Source of the DNA: Tubulanus polymorphus
Lineage: Eukaryota; Animalia; Nemertea
Reading direction: 5' to 3'
Assembly (NCBI RefSeq): GCF_964204645.1
Contig: NC_134034.1
Span: 12,968,962-13,032,961 of the forward strand
Length of the DNA: 64,000 bases
Each line of letters opens with the position of its first letter. Position 1 is the stretch's first letter. A program made the position numbers and the translations under genes. Below, in pieces: positions 7,139 to 44,972 of this stretch. The notes beneath the pieces are model-generated. The model worked only from the letters and a program-made list of their open reading frames with translations. It was not told the origin of the DNA and searched no databases.

Positions 7139-10100
7139 TTATGAGATGAGGCACGCACGGGATTGTGGGTTCTGTTTTCGTCGATGGTTCATTTTCCCCA
7201 CCTGCCTCGCTATTAACATGGCCGCGTTAACTGACGTCCTGCGAGCAGACGATGACTGCTGCTGCCCCCTATCATCAGACGTTTGAACTAAATCTTCAGC
7301 TGATCGCGATTTATATTTTTGAGTTTCCTCAGTTAATTTCGATGCTAAATTCTTACTGGCTTTTCTAACTGGGCCGCCATTTTGAATAGAATTAGCGGAA
7401 TCATCGTTTTTGGTCGCCGTTGTGCGCGATGCTGTATTCCCTGGCGATTTGGTCACGTGGTTATTTGAGTTTTGATTCCCTGCATGAACACTAGTGGTCG
7501 AACTGGACTGTGGGGTATCTGAACGAGACTGTGAGGTATTTGAACTAGACTGTGGGACATTGGAATTAGACTGTGAGGTATTCGAATTTATTATCTGTTT
7601 ATCAGATTTGTCTGCTTTGGCGTTGTCCTGATGACCGTTAGGTAACTTGCTGGCAGTAACAACCGCTTCTGTTGGTTTATTGGGACTAGATATGGACTTT
7701 TCTGGGATTTTCCAAGACTCCCTGGTATCAGGTACGATTGTTTTTGGGATTTTCTCGGATATCTTGGAATCTGAAACCACAGTTTCTATTTTATGATTTT
7801 CTGACATTTTTTTCTTGGTTTCTGTTGTGTCTTCGGCTCTCGCAGAATAACTCGTAACAGTTTCTGGAACTTCGTCTGATTTCTGAGGATCAGTTAAATC
7901 ACTTTTCAGTGACTTCACTTGTTCTGATGACGCAGTTTGCTCATTCTCCACGGGTGGTTGTTTGATGCGCTCGGATTTTCCCTGATCATCATTTGTTGGT
8001 GTCTGGTTAGTTTTTGTGCCACCAGGTGGCGCTGATGTTGATACCTCAGTGGTTTTTATGTCACCAGCTGGCGCTGATGTTGATATCTCGATAGGTTTGG
8101 TGTCACCAGGTGTCGCTGCTGTTGAAAACTCGGTAGTTTTGGTGTCACCAGGTGTCACTGCTGTTGAACTGTCTGTAGGTTTGGTGTCACCAGGTGTCAC
8201 TGCTGTTGAACTCTCTGTAGGTTTGGTTTCGCCAGGAGTCGCTGCTGTTGAACTGTCTGTAGGTTTGGTTTCACCAGGTGTCGCTGCTGTTGAACTGTCT
8301 GTAGGTTTGGTGTCACCAGGTGTCGCTGCTGTTGAAAACTCGGTAGTTTTGGTGTCACCAGGTGTCGCTGCTGTTGAACTGTCTGTAGGTTTGGTTTCAC
8401 CAGGTGTCGCTGCTGTTGAACTGTCTGTAGGTTTGGTTTCGCCAGGTGTCGCTGCTGTTGAACTGTCTGTAGGTTTGGTTTCACCAGGTGTCGCTGCTGT
8501 TGAACTCTCTGTAGGTTTCGTTTCACCAGGTGTCGCTGCTGTTGAACTCTCTGTAGGTTTGGTTTCGCCAGGTGTCGCTGCTGTTGAACTCTCTGTAGGT
8601 TTGGTTTCACCAGGTGTCGCTGCTGTTGAACTCTCTGTAGGTTTGGTTTCGCCAGGTGTCGCTGCTGTTGAACTGTCTGTAGGTTTGGTTTCACCAGGTG
8701 TCGCTGCTGTTGAACTCTCTGTAGGTTTCGTTTCACCAGGTGTCGCTGCTGTTGAAATCTCTGCAGGTTTGGTTTCGCCAGGTGTCGCTGCTGTTGAACT
8801 CTCTGTAGGTTTGGTGTCACCAGGTGTCGCTGTGATTTTATCAGTCTCCATTGACTTCGTCTGGTTAATCTTCACTTCCGGCTCGGATGGACTAGCTACG
8901 GTTATATGGACGGGTTTCGTCGATGACGTCACCGGTTTTTGCGTAGTCGATGACGTCAGCGGTAGTTTGTGCGTAGTTGTTTTGACGGGACTAGCGGGCG
9001 GAGTTTCGAGTCGCTCTCGTATCGTTCTCAACACTTTTCTGCCTTCTTCATAAATCGGGTCGGCGATATTAAACATCGTAACACTTCCGTCCGTACAACC
9101 CAACACTACACCAGCGCCATCTGGTGCGCCGATTATAGCCGTGACGTCAGCGTGCGCTTTATAATTAGCGATACGTTTGCCGTCTGCGACGCGGAAAACG
9201 CGTAGAGTTCTGTGTCCTGAGTGATAGTACAACACGTGTTGGTCGTTACGAGTAAACAATGTCTTCACGCTAAACACTCCCTCGGCTACTTTAGGTATCA
9301 ACTGGTGTACCACGTGACCGTTGTTTTTCAGGTCGAGCAGTTGTAGACCCCCGCGCGTCGGCGCGTACAGACCGTATTTACCGTTCTTCGTGCACTGACC
9401 GTTCCATTTCAACACGGAACGCACGAACGATTTCTTTTTGATATCCCAAATGTTGCCTTTCTCGTGATCGATCAGACCGACTTGCGTCGGTTCACCGGGT
9501 ATCGCTATAAGCCGGTTGTAATCGATATAATTGTTATATTTAGGGATCGTATCGTACAGGTGTGTCCCAGTTTTAGCGTGATACACACTCAACACTTCAA
9601 CGCCTTTTTTATCGACAGCAGGTGTTACTATGAATAGACCGTCGGTAGTTATTACCGGTTCCAGGAAACGAGACCCGTATGTATAATTCATAGCGAATAT
9701 AGTCGAACCGCTCGGGATTCCCCTACAAGTCATAACAGCGCCATCTGTCGTCGATTTCGAGACGGTTACGAATTTGCGGTCGTCCCCGGTGATGACTAGA
9801 TGCAATACGTCAGGTTCTACTGCGGATTTGATAGCTTTCTTACTTTCCACATCCCAAATAAGGACTTTCCCCGATTCGGCGCTGATGACGTAACGGGCGT
9901 CTGTCGTTATCTGCGCGTGCGTAACGATAGCGCTGCTCCCAGAATGCATCAACGACGACGTCATCTGGCCGGATTGTAAATTCCACAATCCGACACAGTT
10001 CCTGGCCACAGCTGCGCCTATACAATCGTTACCGGCTAAACTAACGCCCTCTATCGGCTTCTCGTGTCTATTGATATGGTTGACGCTCTCACGGATGTTG

Positions 10101-13100
10101 TCGAAATTCCAAACTTTGATAGATTTATCAATGGATGACGAAACGACGATATTAGCACCGACGGGCACGGAGGTTAGAGCTATAATTCGACCGAAGTGCG
10201 CGTCCAGCGATCTCAATAGCTCACCGGTCTTCGTCTGCCATACGTACAACACCTTCCGCACTCCGGCGATGAAGTATTGATTATTCTCGGAGAACGCCAC
10301 TAAACTCGACATCGGGTTTTTGTTTGGAATGTTGCGGATTCCAGGCGGTAGACGCATCAGGGTCATCGTACAATGAAACAGATCGATCATCTCCCAAACT
10401 CTGTATCCTAACATCCCAGTCGCCGCTACATACCTACCATCACTCGACAGCGTCAGGCAGTACACGTTGTCCGTATTGTCCGGTAGGGTGCGCTCGTATT
10501 TCCACGTGTTTCCGGTTCGTCTGTAAGCGGCCACGGCGTTATCGCTGATAGCTATGCAGGCGTACAACATCAAACCGTCTTTACTCACAGCTATAGCGCT
10601 GTGTAATTCAAACGGCTTCATTATAGATGGCGCAGTTGTCTGACCGTTTGCGACCGCTCCTGTAGGCGACTGTTTACTAGCGCCCTCTGTCGGTATTGTG
10701 AACGCATTAAGAGTCATATCGTCATCAGTTTCACTTCCGGTTTTATTCAAACAATAGAATTCTCGCCCCGCTATCTGTACGTGTATGATCGGGTTGCTAT
10801 GGTTACCGTTATCGTGTCGAGCGACGAGCTCTCCGTTGCAGTCGTAGACAGCGACTTCCTGATTGGACCAGACGGCGAACAGCAGGTCAGCTGATACGCA
10901 CAAACCGATGACGTTTGATTGCCCGAAGAGCGGTTGGTCGATGATCGTGAATTGACCGGTGATTATGTTACACAATAAAACTTGATCGTTATTGGTAAAA
11001 CTGACCGCGTTCAAATCGTTGTCGAACAACATCAGATTACTCATAATCCCCTTAATCCCCGGATTAATAACTCGGAATATCTCGCCGGTTTTTAAATCCC
11101 AGATTATGAACTGGTTGCTGGCGGAGACGAGGTATTTCAGATCGGAAGTGATGGCGATACCGAACGGAGCGAACGGGTGGCCCTCTAGTGAGTAGTGCAG
11201 CGGACCTCCGGGGGTATGCAGGTAATGATGCGCGGGAACTAATGCGCAGTCGTTCAGCCCGTCCGTATCGCATTGTTTCAATAAAGCGTTGATTTTCTTA
11301 CTCCTGGAGTAGTACGGCAGTAGTCGACCCAGTATCTGCGGGGCTAACATGTCCGGGTATTTGGAAAGGACCGAACTGGACAGACGTAACGCGTCGGCGA
11401 CTAGAGCGATATCCTTATCGTCGGGCATCGCGTTCAGTGCGTCTTCAAAATCACCCAGTACCATTTGTAACGGCATACAACTCAACTTAGCGTGCAACCA
11501 CTTATAGTTAAACAGCACCTCGCTGATTAACAGCTCGTATCGATGCGAACGCACGTAGTGATGCGGTAACTCGTTCAGCTTACGTAGATTATACCGCGTG
11601 ACGTCACCCGAATCGTCCGTGAACGCTAACGGTTGAGCCGACACCTTCCGATCGGACATGCCTCCTCTTTCTTCGGTGTTGAACCTCTGTCTCTGTAAGT
11701 CGGAGAACTCGTACGGTTTCGGTTTACCGGCCCACGTTCCGCGGTAGTATTCGGCCAGGTTCGAGTGTATCTCCGACAGTAGGTTTACGTTCCGGAAGTA
11801 GCGTTCACGTGACGCGTCGATGAACTGACGGTGGTACCAGTCGATGACGTTTATACCGTCAGCCTCGCGTTCGCTTAGATACCCTACAAAATATAAGATA
11901 AACGTGAATGAGCACCCCCTGGTGGTTTGTGAGTGAGGGAAGACCCTGGACACAGTTACAAAATTAAAGGTCAGTCTTTATCTTTATTCTATAATCAATG
12001 CAAACAGGTTAATGACATATCGGCCGAGTATCATATTTAGGACATAGATGGCTGGTGACAATTGGTCAAAAGTTTTAACGTTTAAGGCGTACAAAACATA
12101 TACCGCTTAAAAGATGGATCATTGATTATGATAATCTCTAGATAGTTTAGATTAGGGAGGCTTAGGGGGATTATGAGGATTATGAGTTATTTACCTGGTA
12201 AATCGTTCCTGATACGTGTCCATAGTAACGGCGGTATTCTACGAACCGGCGGTAAATGCCATTGATAAACGTCGTTTAAAACTTTCTCGTCTAAACTCAA
12301 CAAATCCTCTAATTCCGCTTCGGATATACCGCTCTTAGACGCGGTTATATAACCCAGCGCTCGGGATACTAGAGTTCGGCCGTGTTGTTTCTCGATTTTC
12401 TCGAAAAGCTGCACGATATTGTCGTGTATGGTGAACGACAGTTCGCATGATGCCGGACTGCTGTAACTTTTCCAGCGGCAAATCTCATCGAATACCAGTT
12501 TCACGAACAAAGGCAGGTTACATTTAGAAATCGCTTCGGTCACGATCGACCATTGTTCCGCTGTTATCTGCCGATTGGCGTTGTTTAACCAGCTCGTCAA
12601 TATCATGCTGCTTAAATTCGGCCCTAACGGCGTCACTTGTACGAAGTTGCCCTGTTGCGGCACGGCCCGCCGCAAGGTGTCCAGCAGCCCGTAATAGTTG
12701 GGCAAAGTCGACACCACTATTTTCATATTGGGCGGAAGTTCTATCGGTAACCATGCCAACGAATGAGCGCCATCCGCTCCGGACAGCTGGTCGAGCGAAT
12801 CGAGGAATAGTAACAGCGGTTTCTCATAGGTGGCGCATGCGGCGACTAGACGTTTGAAGTATTGGCAGAGCGGCGCCAGTTCGCTGGGAATCTCGTCCAG
12901 TGACTCGCCGTACACGGTGGATATCTGAGTACACAGACTCTGCAGTAGAGGCATTATCGTCGAACTATTTGGCGACGTTCCCAGAAACCTGAGCACTAGA
13001 ATCGGTTGACACGTTTTTGAAAATTTCCATTTCGCCACCTACGAACATAGATAACAATGAATATTTTTTTCATATAAACAATTTAGCGCTCTCAATTTTT

Positions 13101-27832: not shown

Positions 27833-30800
27833 ATGGTTAAAGATAAGGTTAGTTTCATCCCTCAAATATAATTAATATTAATATCTATCATTATGATAAG
27901 CGTTATTATCATAATGACTATGATAATTCATATAACGCCTGAATGTTCTCTAACCTAAATCAGTTCCTTCTATTTGTGTCGTCAGACTTCACGTTCCGTG
28001 CTACCAACGCCATCTATCGATCAGACTTCACTTTCCGTACTACCAGCGACACCTAACGATCAGGATTCACGCCCCGTGTTACCAACGCCACCTAGCGACC
28101 AGTCGGATACACTAACTAATGAGAATGATACACAAATACACATCATATACCAACCGAAAGAGGGCGCTGATGTACGAGGCGCCAGTGATGCGCACGCACC
28201 GACAGCTGATGATAATGACGATGAAACTGACGATGAGATTCTCGACTACAGCGCCACCGGGTGTCAGAAACCCGTAACACACATCAGCAATTATATCAGA
28301 CAGTTTTACGAGGCAAACAGGAATTCGATATGGCGGATATTCTACGCGATTCTATTGGCTGGTTACGCTGTTTATTTCGGGTTCGCGATGGACTATAGTT
28401 TCGGAGATGGTCCATCCGTCTGTTTACTGGTTTTAACCCTACTTGTAATTATCGGTTACGCGATTGTTTTGATTCACAGAAAGTTCGGCGATAAAATCGT
28501 CGCATTTTTTGATCCGTTCGAATTTTTCATACTCTCCTATTACACGTTCCTCAGAAGGTACAAAAACAACTCGAAATATTTGTTATTTCACAGCGAATTC
28601 CGAACCAAAACTCATATAGATAAGCGGTTTATATTTCAGAGGTTTTATAGTGTTAGTTGTTATCGGCGTGATACTTGTGCTAGTGTTCGAGGTCGGTTTG
28701 AAAAATCCACGAAATCTCATATCGCTGTCCGGTGTCGCCGTCTATATTACACTTTTCTACATATTTTCCAAACATCCGGCTCGGGTAAGTATAAAATAAA
28801 GACAAGACAACTAACTTGACATTTTTATATTGAAAAATAACACATATACCGTTCAATATTGTCGACATCGATAATTGAATTGAATTGACCAGTCTAGCCC
28901 GGATATATTGATGACGTAGTACACATCTTCCAAAAAATAATTATTGAAATTTATCGAAAATGAAATAATATTAATGAAATGTATCTGAAACAAAGCCCAA
29001 AATTCACGTTTGTAATCGTTAGTTTGAACCGTCAATATTGATGACGTAGTGCACATCGACTCACACAGAACCCCTTGAATAAAGCATACTAGGTATCGAC
29101 GTGTATAAACATTATTGTAACGGTTTTTACGGCGTAAAAATCCATTTCATTCCTAGGTGAAATTCCCAACTAAATAAACATGTTTTATTTCTTCTGGTAG
29201 GTGAAATGGCGTCCAGTATTTTGGGGTTTAGGTTTACAGTTTATATTCGCTCTGCTGATACTGCGCACTGTTTGGGGATATGCCGCGTTTGATTGGGCCG
29301 GTAAACGAGTTTCCGAATTCCTCGCGCATGCCGACGCCGGTGCCGAATTCGTTTTTGGCGAGGCTTACATAGATCATCCGTTTGCCTTCAAGGTATGTTT
29401 TCAGTTATGTTTTTTTTTTGTGTAGAAAGAATCCCACGATAATAACAAAAAACAGCCCGAAAGTGTTATTTTAAGCTAAATTTAGTATTTAATTCAACGT
29501 TTCGACTATATCCTAATAGTCATCTTCAGGAATACTGTATTCCTTGAGCTAGTGTAGTTTATTCAACTTTTCGACTATATCCTAATAGTCATCTTCAGGA
29601 ATACTGTATTCCTTGAGCTAGTGTAGTTTATTCAACGTTTCCACTATATCCTAATAGTCATCTTCAGGAATACTGTATTCCTTGAGATAGTGTAGTTTAT
29701 TCGACGTTTCGACTTTATCCTAATAGTCATCTTCAGGAATACTGTATTCCTTGAGCTAGTGTAGCTTATTCGACGTTTCGACTATATCCTAATAGTCATC
29801 TTCAGGAATACTGTATTCCTTGAGCTAGTGTAGTTTATTTCAACGTTTCGACTATATCCTAATAGTCATCTTCAGGAATACTGTATTCCTTGAGCTAGTG
29901 TAGTTTATTCAACGTTTCGGCGATATCCTAATAGTCATCTTCGGGAATACTGTATTCCTTGAGCTAGTGTAGCTTATTCGACGTTTCGACTATATCCTAA
30001 TAGTCATCTTCAGGAATACTGTATTCCTTGAGCTAGTGTAGCTTATTCGACGTTTCGACTATATCCTAATAGTCATCTTCAGGAATACTGTATTCCTTGA
30101 GCTAGTGTAGTTTATTTCAACGTTTCGACTATATCCTAATAGTCATCTTCAGGAATACTGTATTCCTTGAGCTAGTGTAGTTTATTAGACGTTTCGACTA
30201 TATCCTAATAGTCATCTTCAGGAATACTGTATTCCTTGAGCTAGTGTAGTTTATTTCAACGTTTCGACTATATCCTAATAGTCATCTTCAGGAATACTGT
30301 ATTCCTTGAGCTAGTGTAGTTTATTAGACGTTTCGACTATATCCTAATAGTCATCTTCAGGAATACTGTATTCCTTGAGCTAGTGTAGTTTATTTCAACG
30401 TTTCGACTATATCCTAATAGTCATCTTCAGGAATACTGTATTCCTTGAGCTAGTGTAGTTTATTCAACGTTTCGACTATATCCTAATAGTCATCTTCAGG
30501 AATACTGTATTCCTTGAGCTAGTGTAGTTTATTCAACTTTTCGACTATATCCTAATAGTCATCTTCAGGAATACTGTATTCCTTGAGCTAGTGTAGTTTA
30601 TTCAACGTTTCGACTATTTATCCTAATAGTCATCTTCAGGAATATTGTATTCCTTGAGCTAGTGTAGTTTATTCAACGTTTCGACTATATCCTAATAGTC
30701 ATCTTGAGGAATACTGTATTCCTTGAGCTAGTGTAGTTTATTCAACGTTTCGACTATATCCTAATAGTCATCTTCAGGAATACTGTATTCCTTGAGATAG

Positions 30801-33800
30801 TGTAGTTTATTCAACGTTTCGACTATATCCTAATAGTCATCTTGAGGAATACTGTATTCCTTGAGCTAGTGTAGTTTATTCAACGTTTCGACTATTTATC
30901 CTAATAGTCATCTCCAGGAATACTGTATTCCTTGAGCTAGTGTAGTTTATTCAACGTTTCGACTATTTATCCTAATAGTCATCTCCAGGAATAGTGGAAC
31001 TTCTTGCTTCAGTTACATTTTCGAACTGTTTTTCGTTATTATTGTGGGATTCTCTCTACGTCGCTTCAACACGGATATTGTGTTTTATCAATCGTGATTA
31101 TGTTTTCTTGGTTGTTCCGCTTACAAAACTCTACTGTTTATATCTTATATATCTTATCAAATATCAGATTAATACTTTTGTACGGTCACATTTTAAAAAT
31201 AATCTTGAAATGATTTGATTATTTTTATGAATTGAAGTTTATTTAAACACGAAAGAACAGTACAGGGCATAATACATTACGCAAATATGAATTAGTCATT
31301 AATGTACAAAAACGTGTCGAGTAATTGTCCCAAGCCAAACAAGGCTGAACTCAGAGAGGGGATGAACCCTGAAAACTGATAATGAAAATAAAAATAGATT
31401 ATGAAATATACATGTAATAATTCTGATAAATGAGATCCTTACAATAATGATGGTGTCAGTGATTGTTTTCATTTATTACAGGTACTACCAGTGATAGTAT
31501 TGTATTTATTTATTACAGGTACTACCAGTAATAGTATTGTATTTATTTATTACAGGTACTACCAGTAATAGTATTGTATTTATTTATTACAGGTACTACC
31601 AGTGATAGTATTGTATTTATTTATTACAGGTACTACCAGTGATAGTATTGTATTTATTTATTACAGGTACTACCAGTAATAGTATTGTATTTATTTATTA
31701 CAGGTACTACCAGTAATAGTATTGTATTTATTTATTACAGGTTCTACCAGTGATAGTATTGTATTTATTTATTACAGGTACTACCAGTAATAGTATTGTA
31801 TTTATTTATTACAGGTACTACCAGTGATAGTATTGTATTTATTTATTACAGGTACTACCAGTAATAGTATTGTATTTATTTATTACAGGTACTACCAGTG
31901 ATAGTATTGTATTTATTTATTACAGGTACTACCAGTGATAGTATTTTTCAGCGCTACTGTATCCGTGCTAACGTATATCGGTATAATGCAGATAGTTGTA
32001 CAGAAAATCGCCTGGTTCATGCAGAAAGTGATGGGTACAACTGCTGCCGAATCCGTTAACGCCGCCGCTAATATATTCATCAGTCAGGTAAGAGGCCAGC
32101 TGATTGGTTAGTCGATCGAATACAGGCCGTTGATTGGTCGATTCGAGGTCGATTTATTCAAATGAGCTGAAATTCAACAAACAATGCGATAATGAAACAC
32201 GTTTCTAGGTGGTTCTAGATGGTTCGTGTGTTTTTTTTTGCAGAGTGAAGCGCCGTTGATGATTCGCCCTCTAATTCCTCACATGACTCGATCTGAACTG
32301 CATTCAGTCTGTACCGGTGGCTTCGCGACAGTTGCCGGAAGTGTCATGGCCGCTTATATCGAATTCGGGGTAAATAATACCGGTCCGACAGTCTCGTTTC
32401 GGCTAGAATTCAAAATCAGTAAAATTGCCTCAATTCAGACTCGTAGACTCACCGTAGAATTGAGAGTCCATTCTGACGTGCTTTATCAATTCGGCGATTT
32501 TGTAAATTCGCATATTTGTTTTTTTTTTCTAGGTACCTGCTAATCATTTGTTGAGCGCATCTGTAATGTCAGCGCCAGCTGCACTCGCCATGTCGAAACT
32601 ATTCTGGCCGGAAACAAGAACATCCAAAACGACGACTGATCACGTGAGGAATATGGAAAAACCGTAACTATCTTTGAAACTACAATTACAAATACAAATA
32701 CAAATACAAACAGTCTTTATTGAACTTCATAATCACCATAGGAATGATGATAACGATGATGAAGACATTACAAACAGATTTGAAATTTGCAATAGTCGGA
32801 TATGATAATCATGCATTTAGCCATCGCATGCACAGCTTCCAGTGAGTTGAGCACAGGTTCAGAGTCTGGCTTCACGAGGAGTAATAACTAAATTATTTAT
32901 CGGTGGATACGCACAGAGAGGGAGCGGGAAGGGAATCTGGGACGTAGGGAGTCAGTCAAACTAATCACTTCAATGTTGTAATCTTCTTTCCAGGAAAGAG
33001 GGTAATATTTTAGAAGCTGCATCAAACGGTGCCTCGGCCTCTATCAAACTGGTAGCCGGAGTCGCTGTGAATCTAATCGCGTTTATTTCAATACTTCACT
33101 TTATAAACTCCAGTCTGATGTGGCTCGGAGCTCGAGTTGGATACCCTTATCTTACATTCGAGGTAACATCGCATCGATTCTTTGCAACCCGGCGCACTAA
33201 CTATTTGTAAACTTTCAAAAACTGATCGTCCACACTAAACTAATCTGTTAACTCAGTTTGTCCCTCACAGATCCGCACCTATAATACTATTCTCTCCTCA
33301 AATGATCTGCTCCTAGATTCTTATTCTCTTCCGCTTCCAGATGATCTGCTCCTAGATTCTTATTCTCTTCCGCTTCCAGATGATCTGCTCCTATGTTTTG
33401 TGGCCGTTCTCGTTTGTAATGGGTGTGGATATGAGCGACTGTCGCGCCGTCGCGGGACTTATCGGAATTAAAGTGTCGATCAACGAGTTCGTAGGTTACG
33501 CAGCCCTATCGACGCTTATAGAAAACAGAAAAACGTTTCAAAAATACATCGCAGCTACCGGAAACGGAAGCGTTGTGTATCATAACGATGACGTCATATT
33601 GGAAAGTTGGAACAAAACGCTGATTGGGGGTTTCATGACGGTAAGCCTCAGAACCATAGATTGAACCCTAGAACCATTGAGAACCATTGAGAACCGTTGA
33701 GAACCATATAACTCATAGAACTCGAGCGTCATTGAATCCAGGAACCTGAGAATCCTAGAACCCTGGAATCAAACAACCATAGAACTCATAAAATTCGAGA

Positions 33801-44724: not shown

Positions 44725-44972
44725 GATAAAAACCCACTATTTACAGATTAAAAGAATTTAAAAACAAGAATTTATCTATTCAATCTAAAATTTAAAGAAT
44801 TCACGACGTTTCGATCTCACCCTATAGATCACCGTTAGGTGTCACACAGGCGTCACACCTGACGATGATCTCTAGGGTGAGATCGAAACGTCGTGTATTT
44901 TTGATTGAAATAAATAAATTCTTGTTTTTAAATTCTTTTAATCTGTAGATAGTGGCTGGGTTTTTTTTTATC
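44725..44972. mobile_element. Palindromic Penelope-like terminal element carrying head-to-head minimal hammerheads (family A, copy 2)
   Basis: ~115-bp arms inverted about 44848. The + arm has an intact ribozyme; the left arm core is mutated (CUAACGG). Confidence 0.75.
44855..44896 (+). ncRNA. Minimal type I hammerhead ribozyme
   Basis: ACAC-CUGACGA-U-GAUCUC(UAGGGU)GAGAUC-GAAA-CG-UC^GUGU; predicted cleavage after 44892; stem I ACAC/GUGU. Confidence 0.8.

Follow-up and report, generated by a model that had tools for sequence, protein, structure and literature searches.

Introduction

Minimal hammerhead ribozymes of the kind found in Penelope-like elements (PLEs) have no helix III and are characterized by a palindromic extension of the core, a helix I about 5 bp long and an unpaired base ahead of stem II (PMC4209133); in the same study they occur as pairs about 100-700 nt or about 3 kb apart. 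Here we analyze a tandem array of such motifs in a 64,000-nt stretch of the genome of the nemertean Tubulanus polymorphus (NCBI RefSeq assembly GCF_964204645.1, contig NC_134034.1, positions 12,968,962 to 13,032,961 of the forward strand), which is called the window below and whose own numbering is used throughout. The motifs resemble the PLE ribozymes in being of type I, with CUGANGA and GAAA boxes and a palindromic ANNU that allows dimers (PMC4209133; review PMC6765202), and they share the helix I of ~5 bp, the unpaired base 5' of stem II, the location in a terminal repeat or at the 3' end of elements encoding a reverse transcriptase (RT) and a GIY-YIG domain, and a massive genomic copy number. 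They differ from them in that the ribozyme segment is reiterated at a 69-nt period, up to about 40 times, and in that stem II has 5-6 bp, compared to 7-8 bp in the schistosome families (PMC4209133).

The combination of RT and GIY-YIG is the domain pair of canonical endonuclease-positive PLEs (PMC8557442, PMC11167929), which are recognized by extensive truncation at the 5' end, by a 5'-truncated copy in inverted orientation that creates inverted repeats, by a tail of 30-40 bp confined to one end and by a hammerhead near the 3' end (PMC8557442; for the one-ended tail also PMC11167929). In vitro, both nicked strands are extended by a lizard PLE, and two RT start sites bracket its tail (PMC11167929). 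All of the hallmarks listed in PMC8557442 were found here, together with open reading frames (ORFs) for RT with a C-terminal GIY-YIG domain in the same genome, and two alternative 3' termini match the two RT start sites (PMC11167929). Unlike canonical endonuclease-positive PLEs, the window copy has no ORF, and it holds only about 110-150 nt of a PLE 3' end plus the amplified ribozyme.

Hammerhead tandem repeats are also known as non-LTR retrozymes (LTR, long terminal repeat), animal repeats of 170-400 nt for which circular RNAs have been shown (PMC7229834). A 2026 preprint reports retrozymes with consensus lengths of 51-972 bp and homology to PLE terminal regions, with multimers at chromosome ends or centers and monomers evenly spread, and proposes that retrozymes are non-autonomous PLE derivatives, a proposal that according to its authors is untested beyond vertebrates (bioRxiv 10.64898/2026.07.22.740005). 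The arrays described here share with these retrozymes their non-coding tandem repeats, one type-I hammerhead per unit, their many loci, an origin in a PLE terminal region and the presence of autonomous PLEs in the same genome. Their 69-nt unit is below the 170-400 nt of PMC7229834 and within the 51-972 bp of bioRxiv 10.64898/2026.07.22.740005, which renders outdated the statement, in a preliminary description of this DNA, that retrozyme units typically measure a few hundred nt. On the other hand, the unit is essentially the ribozyme alone, of the helix-III-less PLE type; the array is known from DNA sequence, whereas monomer RNAs have been shown for the retrozymes; and the arrays keep the PLE body, tail, inverted arm and target-site duplication. 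Newt satellite 2, schistosome Sm-alpha and the cave-cricket satellites are likewise transcribable repeats with type-I hammerheads of weak helix III, which act there as dimers (PMC4209133, PMC7229834), but their units measure 300-500 bp and form a canonical short helix III hairpin, and flanks made of PLE tail or body are not described for them in these two papers. As set out below, the window array is probably an amplified hammerhead module of a PLE 3' end, which was inserted dead on arrival as a head-to-head, 5'-truncated pair.

Results

Structure of the array and its hammerhead motif

Tandem Repeats Finder placed the window array at 29485-30993, with a period of 69, 21.7 copies, 96% matches and a score of 2739, in agreement with the 22 copies of a 69-nt unit given in the preliminary description, and a 278-nt higher-order period obtained an equal score. 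The features of the array are:

29485..30993, minus strand: tandem array of 22 units of 69-71 nt, each composed of a hammerhead motif and a linker
After GUU or GUC in every array unit, minus strand: predicted cleavage site, from the motif reading
30739..30782, minus strand: fully intact example unit, from the 5' to the 3' strand of stem I, with predicted cleavage after 30744; it represents family F1 in the covariation alignment below

Read on the minus strand, each unit begins with UAUUC (the 5' strand of stem I), CUGAAGA, an unpaired U and stem II, GACUA(U)/(A)UAGUC, with a loop of 6-8 nt, and continues with GAAA, CG, U, U or C, GAAUA (the 3' strand of stem I) and the linker. A complete core with its stems and an ACGU palindrome had been claimed for this strand, and all 22 motifs could be read there, confirming at the level of the motif that the unit is a minimal type-I hammerhead in which the stem III hairpin is lacking and the palindrome is present. 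A strict test, which required CUGANGA, GAAA, a 5-bp stem II, ACGU, an H17 other than G and no fewer than 4 bp in stem I, was passed by 9 of the 22 units. In 4 further units the sole defect was a bulged A in stem I (GAAAUA), which is the state of the autonomous element too, so that 13 of the 22 hammerheads are plausibly intact, close to the 14 or so counted previously. The lesions named in that count were all recovered: the core is altered in 5 of the 22 units (CUGGAGA twice, CUCAAGA twice and CCGAAGA once, the last with a broken stem II as well), and the palindrome, present in 20 of the 22, is lost in two (GAAAAGU in both). Two units have one stem II mismatch each. Overall, CUGANGA was found in 17 of the 22 units, GAAA in all 22, and the NUH cleavage triplet was GUU or GUC in all 22.

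A search of the 268-Mb genome with the pattern CTGANGA-N14-24-GAAACGTH returned 4,184 matches, compared to 26 for the reversed control, indicating that the motif is not a product of chance. The Rfam hammerhead models gave no match to the array, neither at the gathering threshold nor at E<=10, because these models expect a stem III hairpin that has no counterpart here. The genome as a whole contains more than 4,000 minimal hammerhead motifs with ACGU, 160-fold above the reversed-pattern control and belonging to several families, and head-to-head pairs of minimal hammerheads 10-150 nt apart are common in it.

Boundaries of the insertion

The array is enclosed by the following features:

29405..29413: target-site duplication, copy 1, AAAACATAA as read on the minus strand
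29414..29421: filler of 8 nt between duplication and element end, ACAAAAAA on the minus strand
29422..29488, minus strand: 3' body module B of the array-bearing arm, ending in ...GGGATTCTTTCTAC, with no tail
30990..31059, plus strand: second PLE copy, inverted and 5'-truncated, made of the last hammerhead bases and B and abutting the array head-to-head
31060..31096, plus strand: PLE tail T, 37 nt, ending in ...CAATCGTG, on the plus-strand arm only
31098..31106: target-site duplication, copy 2, the identical 9-mer AAAACATAA

By these boundaries, the array would be one half of a head-to-head PLE insertion that spans 29422-31096. The array-bearing arm comprises the minus-strand B module and the 22 units (29422-30993) and has no tail, and an inverted repeat of 45 nt and 87% identity (29422-29466 and 31015-31059) brackets the array. 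At the junction that corresponds to the filler, other copies have 0-4 extra nt. The two arms were compared with the 3' end of L077, a genomic copy with an RT/GIY-YIG ORF: the minus arm (B plus the last unit) matched it at 88 of 101 aligned positions, and the plus arm (30990-31096) matched positions 42-142 of its 3' module, plus strand, at 86 of 99. In an independent data set, a 406-nt contig of run X1 runs from the exon through the intron and the B arm into the first unit (29250-29518), which shows that the insertion is present there as well, and no empty-site allele was seen among the contig joints of runs X1 and X2.

Inverted repeats around an internal satellite would also be expected of a miniature inverted-repeat transposable element (MITE) or fold-back DNA transposon moved by a transposase, and the 45-nt inverted repeat and the many short fold-back copies in the genome are in keeping with such an element. 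However, the duplications vary from 8 to at least 14 bp in length instead of being fixed, the ends are asymmetric in that just one arm bears the 37-nt tail, some copies (L034, L039, L041 and L048) have duplications around a single arm, and both arms share homology with the 3' ends of RT/GIY-YIG elements. We have therefore rejected a DNA transposon on account of its variable duplications, one-sided tail and PLE 3'-end homology, and we regard it as the most improbable of the explanations.

The PLE family and its autonomous copies

The architecture of the family emerged when the window copy was compared with about 45 others in the genome. In the orientation of the hammerhead, a basic element consists of H (the hammerhead, ~55 nt), B (~60 nt) and T (37 nt), and it ends either at the end of B, ...GGGATTCTCTCTAC, or at the end of T, ...CAATCGTG. 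Its copies take three forms, namely a single arm H-B-T, a fold-back in which an inverted T-B-H arm stands head-to-head with an H-B arm, and a fold-back or truncated copy in which H is reiterated at the 69-nt period. Together they number in the hundreds and have variable duplications of 8-14 bp. Exact direct repeats of 8-14 nt flanked the copies at 15 of 31 loci, with several more having 12-13-nt repeats with one mismatch, while only 5 of 2000 shuffled pairs (0.25%) reached at least 8 nt. The tail T was on one arm only, both in the window and at other loci.

The preliminary description had pointed to a possible link with a PLE encoding RT and GIY-YIG, and such a link was found. A GIY-YIG profile search of the genome gave 150 scored matches among 310 candidates, often in open frames of 817-841 aa and frequently in head-to-head pairs; hundreds of RT/GIY-YIG ORFs of this length look intact. 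At 8 of 19 distinct loci, an H-B-T module of ~145 nt and 87-91% identity lies downstream of the GIY-YIG ORF, starting ~315 nt past the stop codon of an ORF that encodes RT plus a C-terminal GIY-YIG domain. The partial ORF of L080 matched the Pfam profiles RVT_1 (E 4.6e-10) and GIY-YIG (E 7.3e-6). Both 3' termini are represented among the RT/GIY-YIG copies, with L066 and L071 ending at the B end and L064, L075, L077 and L080 at the T end.

PLEs have been reported to insert into or beside earlier PLE copies. At one array locus, L004 (G000:C8:1352012-1355212), a copy of the family is inserted inside the hammerhead of the other fold-back family, and its 13-bp duplication, CGTCGTCAGGTGT, is part of the interrupted ribozyme. 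The window itself contains a second hammerhead family in a head-to-head fold-back at 44725-44972, with CUGACGA, stem II GAUCUC/GAGAUC and GAAACGUC; this is probably another PLE insertion product, since its architecture matches the short fold-backs of the 69-nt-unit family.

Dispersal and evolution of the arrays

The junction between units, which is specific to the arrays and absent from single-copy elements, had 1,531 matches in the genome at up to 2 mismatches and 0 in the control, so the array is not a single-locus one, and the F1 hammerhead had 2,462 and 0, respectively. An identical consensus unit was present at 21 of 25 sampled loci, and units differed by 1.64 positions per 69 nt within arrays and by 1.95 between them. 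Arrays of 4-22 units lie within duplication-flanked insertions at the window locus (WIN), L004, L026 and L030, while at L012, L015 and L059 the array follows immediately upon the final ~110 nt of the PLE 3' untranslated region (3'UTR), and these three read as 5'-truncated copies of a PLE-derived RNA that already bore the array. About 15 of 21 arrays run into a B-type module in constant phase. This constant phase, the PLE 3'UTR and the duplications indicate that the PLE machinery copied array-bearing templates, beginning at a linear 3' end.

The arrays have also changed in place. Eleven locus-private variants, among them the CUCAAGA and a G-to-T change in the linker of the window array, each occur in at least two units of one array, indicating that in situ duplication took place as well, and the window array also shows alternating 2-unit blocks. 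Mutation events per position in array units were equally frequent in the core and the linker (1.8 and 1.92, respectively; p=0.89), pointing to neutral decay as for inserted retroelement copies. These observations have some affinity with a passive satellite, in which one dead PLE end per locus would have been expanded alone by slippage or unequal crossing-over and the arrays would never have been mobilized: higher-order periods of 139 and 278 nt and identical blocks of variant units in the window array, the 11 locus-private variants, the neutral mutation spectrum and the gathering of arrays towards the ends of large contigs among the places listed are all in line with it. Nevertheless, the unit junction that single-copy elements lack occurs 1,531 times on many contigs, the consensus unit is identical at 21 of 25 loci with a divergence between arrays that barely exceeds that within them, and arrays lie inside duplication-flanked insertions or directly after a truncated PLE 3'UTR; that one and the same junction should have originated anew at every locus is implausible. 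Passive expansion as the sole process is thus largely refuted, and we consider it highly improbable.

With respect to the origin of the unit, one reading takes the first ~20 nt of the linker as the start of B and the rest as similar to the bases upstream of H, so that the unit may have arisen as a direct 69-nt duplication spanning H. We also considered that the linker was born at a fold-back junction through template switching at a CTTCAG microhomology, but direct duplication is the simpler reading and fits the 3' ends of L014, L021 and L022.

Among the places listed, array units cluster at low and high coordinates of the large contigs C1, C2, C3, C6, C8 and C10, for example at 31.2-31.4 Mb of C1, at 30.7-31.7 Mb of C2 and at 1.06-1.9 and 12.99-13.05 Mb of C10, and hammerheads in single copy are scattered over C1 and C2. 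From the coordinates, the clusters would be terminal on these contigs, and the family thus resembles non-LTR retrozymes in that its multimers are apparently near chromosome ends and its monomers spread out.

A model for the insertion

We propose that the template was a PLE-derived RNA in which the H segment had been duplicated in tandem, and that the PLE enzyme converted it to DNA by target-primed reverse transcription, with priming on both nicked strands and starts at either the B end or the T end. Such two-strand, two-site priming would give rise to inverted arms with a tail on only one of them, and the window structure would result from a pair of convergent cDNAs, both truncated at the 5' end, of which one began at the B end and the other at the T end. 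Differing points of 5' truncation would leave differing numbers of units, and unequal exchange or slippage would then have reshaped each array in place. The hammerhead itself is probably a dimeric, protein-assisted processing site of multimeric element transcripts.

A number of observations weigh against this model. Priming on both strands has been seen in vitro with a lizard element and not in this genome, so its use here is by analogy, and snap-back synthesis or template switching would yield identical inverted arms. The 9-bp duplication in the window sits in an A-rich context of low complexity. The comparison covered 3' parts and ORFs, and among these partial copies no array-bearing 3' region was seen beside an intact ORF. 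Finally, about 6 of 21 arrays (L003, L013, L016, L027, L029 and L006) have no recognizable B module on their 3' side, which may reflect a second route of spread or later truncation.

Conservation and predicted folding of the ribozyme

Four hammerhead families, namely the 69-nt-unit family (F1), the fold-back family at 44854-44897 of the window (F4), L068 and L079, were aligned and examined for covariation. In this alignment 94% of the cells were paired, compared to 29-44% in slid controls, and compensatory double changes were found at 10 of 13 pairs. Stem II was 100% paired with 5 of 6 pairs compensatory, and stem I 85% paired with 4 of 5. The catalytic core was invariant across the four PLE families and the palindrome was kept through change, with ACGU becoming AUAU in another PLE family. 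Core and covariation agree with the earlier assignment to a PLE-type minimal hammerhead in which a palindrome replaces stem III. Across the four families the fold is clearly conserved, through selection in the active PLE lineages, and the inserted array units are no longer subject to it. In addition, UAG opens loop II in all four families (alignment columns 25-27), though their stem II sequences differ completely, and this invariant triplet could be a tertiary contact or a protein-binding site.

Folding was predicted with a nearest-neighbor model, which ignores tertiary contacts and proteins. In the linker, GGAAUAC lies just upstream of GUAUUCC, a segment made up of the stem I strand and C3. 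In an RNA of two units, the near-palindromes of the linkers were predicted to pair between units with a probability of about 1, leaving stem I with a probability of about 0, while stem II formed with a probability of 0.98, and the double-hammerhead fold had a predicted energy of -8.3 kcal/mol compared to -36.1 for the minimum free energy structure. The linker near-palindrome is therefore predicted to sequester the stem I strand and C3 and to lock the ribozyme in an inactive state. The poor cleavage seen in published systems points in the same direction as this unfavorable folding: the minimal hammerheads of PLEs show poor cleavage in vitro, also when dimeric (PMC4209133), one PLE hammerhead needed the protein of its element and no read from RNA sequencing ended at its cleavage site (PMC11167929), and 8 of 9 Xenopus retrozyme dimers did not cleave (bioRxiv 10.64898/2026.07.22.740005).

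The host gene and the transcript signal

The insertion lies ~30 nt into an intron of a transporter gene and is, as had been described, antisense to it, the upstream exon being:

29249..29392, plus strand: exon of the host gene, nucleoside-transporter-like, ending in ...AEFVFGEAYIDHPFAFK, with a GT donor at 29393

The exon that follows the insertion-bearing intron reads VLPVIVFFS..., which we take to be the signature of a concentrative nucleoside transporter. In their antisense orientation, the array units cannot cut the host transcript. A contig of 1,711 nt from run X2 departs from the genome at 29395, that is, at the exon end (29392) plus GTA, the three bases common to the start of the intron and the start of the next exon. 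Because spliced cDNA would leave the genome at the same point, we read X2, which like X1 is a run of unrecorded kind, as probably RNA; none of the runs listed was recorded as RNA. In this run, words from the unit had a depth of 10^2-10^4, compared to about 50 for the exon and 0.3 for unique intron sequence. This hints at the existence of unit-bearing RNA, although neither strand nor ends nor locus can be read from the X2 contigs, and a minor carry-over of DNA multiplied by ~1,500 copies could account for much of the signal.

On the plus strand, each unit of the array has an acceptor-like CATCTTCAG|G, which amounts to 22 possible cryptic acceptor sites no more than 1.6 kb from the real donor, and the X2 contig is spliced normally past them. 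At 31462-31945, 13 units of 37 nt stand in tandem, each joining a ...TTACAG acceptor to the opening 17 nt (GTACTACCAGTGATAGT) of the transporter exon that follows, and only the last copy has the in-frame continuation VLPVIVFFS....

Elsewhere in the window, the minus strand of 7139-13038 holds an open frame of 1,604 aa that encodes an NWD2-type beta-propeller and WD40 repeats. In front of it is a frame of 283 aa with NACHT and an NWD1-like winged helix, and this region looks like a large NACHT-WD40 (NWD-like) gene. An ORF for a rhodopsin-type G protein-coupled receptor is found at 760-1743.

Self-cleavage and circular RNAs

The preliminary description had taken the array for a candidate ultra-small retrozyme, whose minus-strand transcripts would cut themselves through dimers of neighboring units into 69-nt monomers that could circularize and be copied back. 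On such a model the copying, possibly by a rolling circle, would generate and spread the arrays. Several properties of the array would suit such a life cycle. The motifs are complete and 13 of 22 plausibly intact, the ACGU palindrome permits a 4-bp intermolecular helix III between neighbors as in the published dimer model for minimal hammerheads (PMC4209133), and the family is young and dispersed. Metazoan hammerhead tandem repeats yield circular RNAs in other species (PMC7229834), the excess of unit words over exon words in X2 is suggestive, though no more, and about 6 of 21 arrays have no recognizable 3' PLE module. In contrast, the majority of arrays terminate in the PLE body at a constant phase and have the signatures of PLE insertion, for which a linear template suffices, and a constant-phase run into the 3' module is not what rolling-circle copying of 69-nt circles would produce. 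In addition, the predicted two-unit fold traps stem I, and cleavage of PLE hammerheads and of Xenopus retrozyme dimers is weak in publications. The core mutates like the linker, an outcome that the preliminary description had itself set against its reading. We therefore hold an active ultra-small retrozyme to be unlikely.

A narrower form of this idea seems less likely still, namely that minus-strand array RNA is cut in vivo, with the help of a PLE protein or a chaperone, into 69-nt monomers that are ligated to form the smallest ribozyme-bearing circular RNAs known from animals, and that the arrays with no 3' module (~6 of 21) stem from rolling-circle reverse transcription. A near-minimal, free-standing replicon is at odds with an array bounded by a PLE body and tail, an inverted truncated arm and a target-site duplication. 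An ultra-small replicon that makes 69-nt circles is thus not supported, with several lines of evidence against it, and the original interpretation as a whole is partly supported.

Discussion

The PLE modules at its boundaries and the flanking duplication indicate that the array would be the product of an ordinary target-primed PLE insertion of a linear template, and it opens no new class of replicon. It represents an unusually clean invertebrate case of a hammerhead satellite born from, and spread by, a PLE, and it fits the published picture of the non-LTR retrozyme as a non-autonomous PLE derivative. What the window array adds to this picture is an insertion anatomy that has been kept, with tail, inverted arm, duplication and autonomous copies in the same genome, which ties the array directly to PLE-type integration, as well as a linker that, by prediction, holds the ribozyme in an inactive fold. 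The one-sided tail, the two 3' termini and the head-to-head arms form the pattern expected if, as seen in vitro, reverse transcription starts at two sites and both strands are extended. For the annotation of this genome, the hammerhead satellites and the fold-back hammerheads belong together as PLE insertion products.

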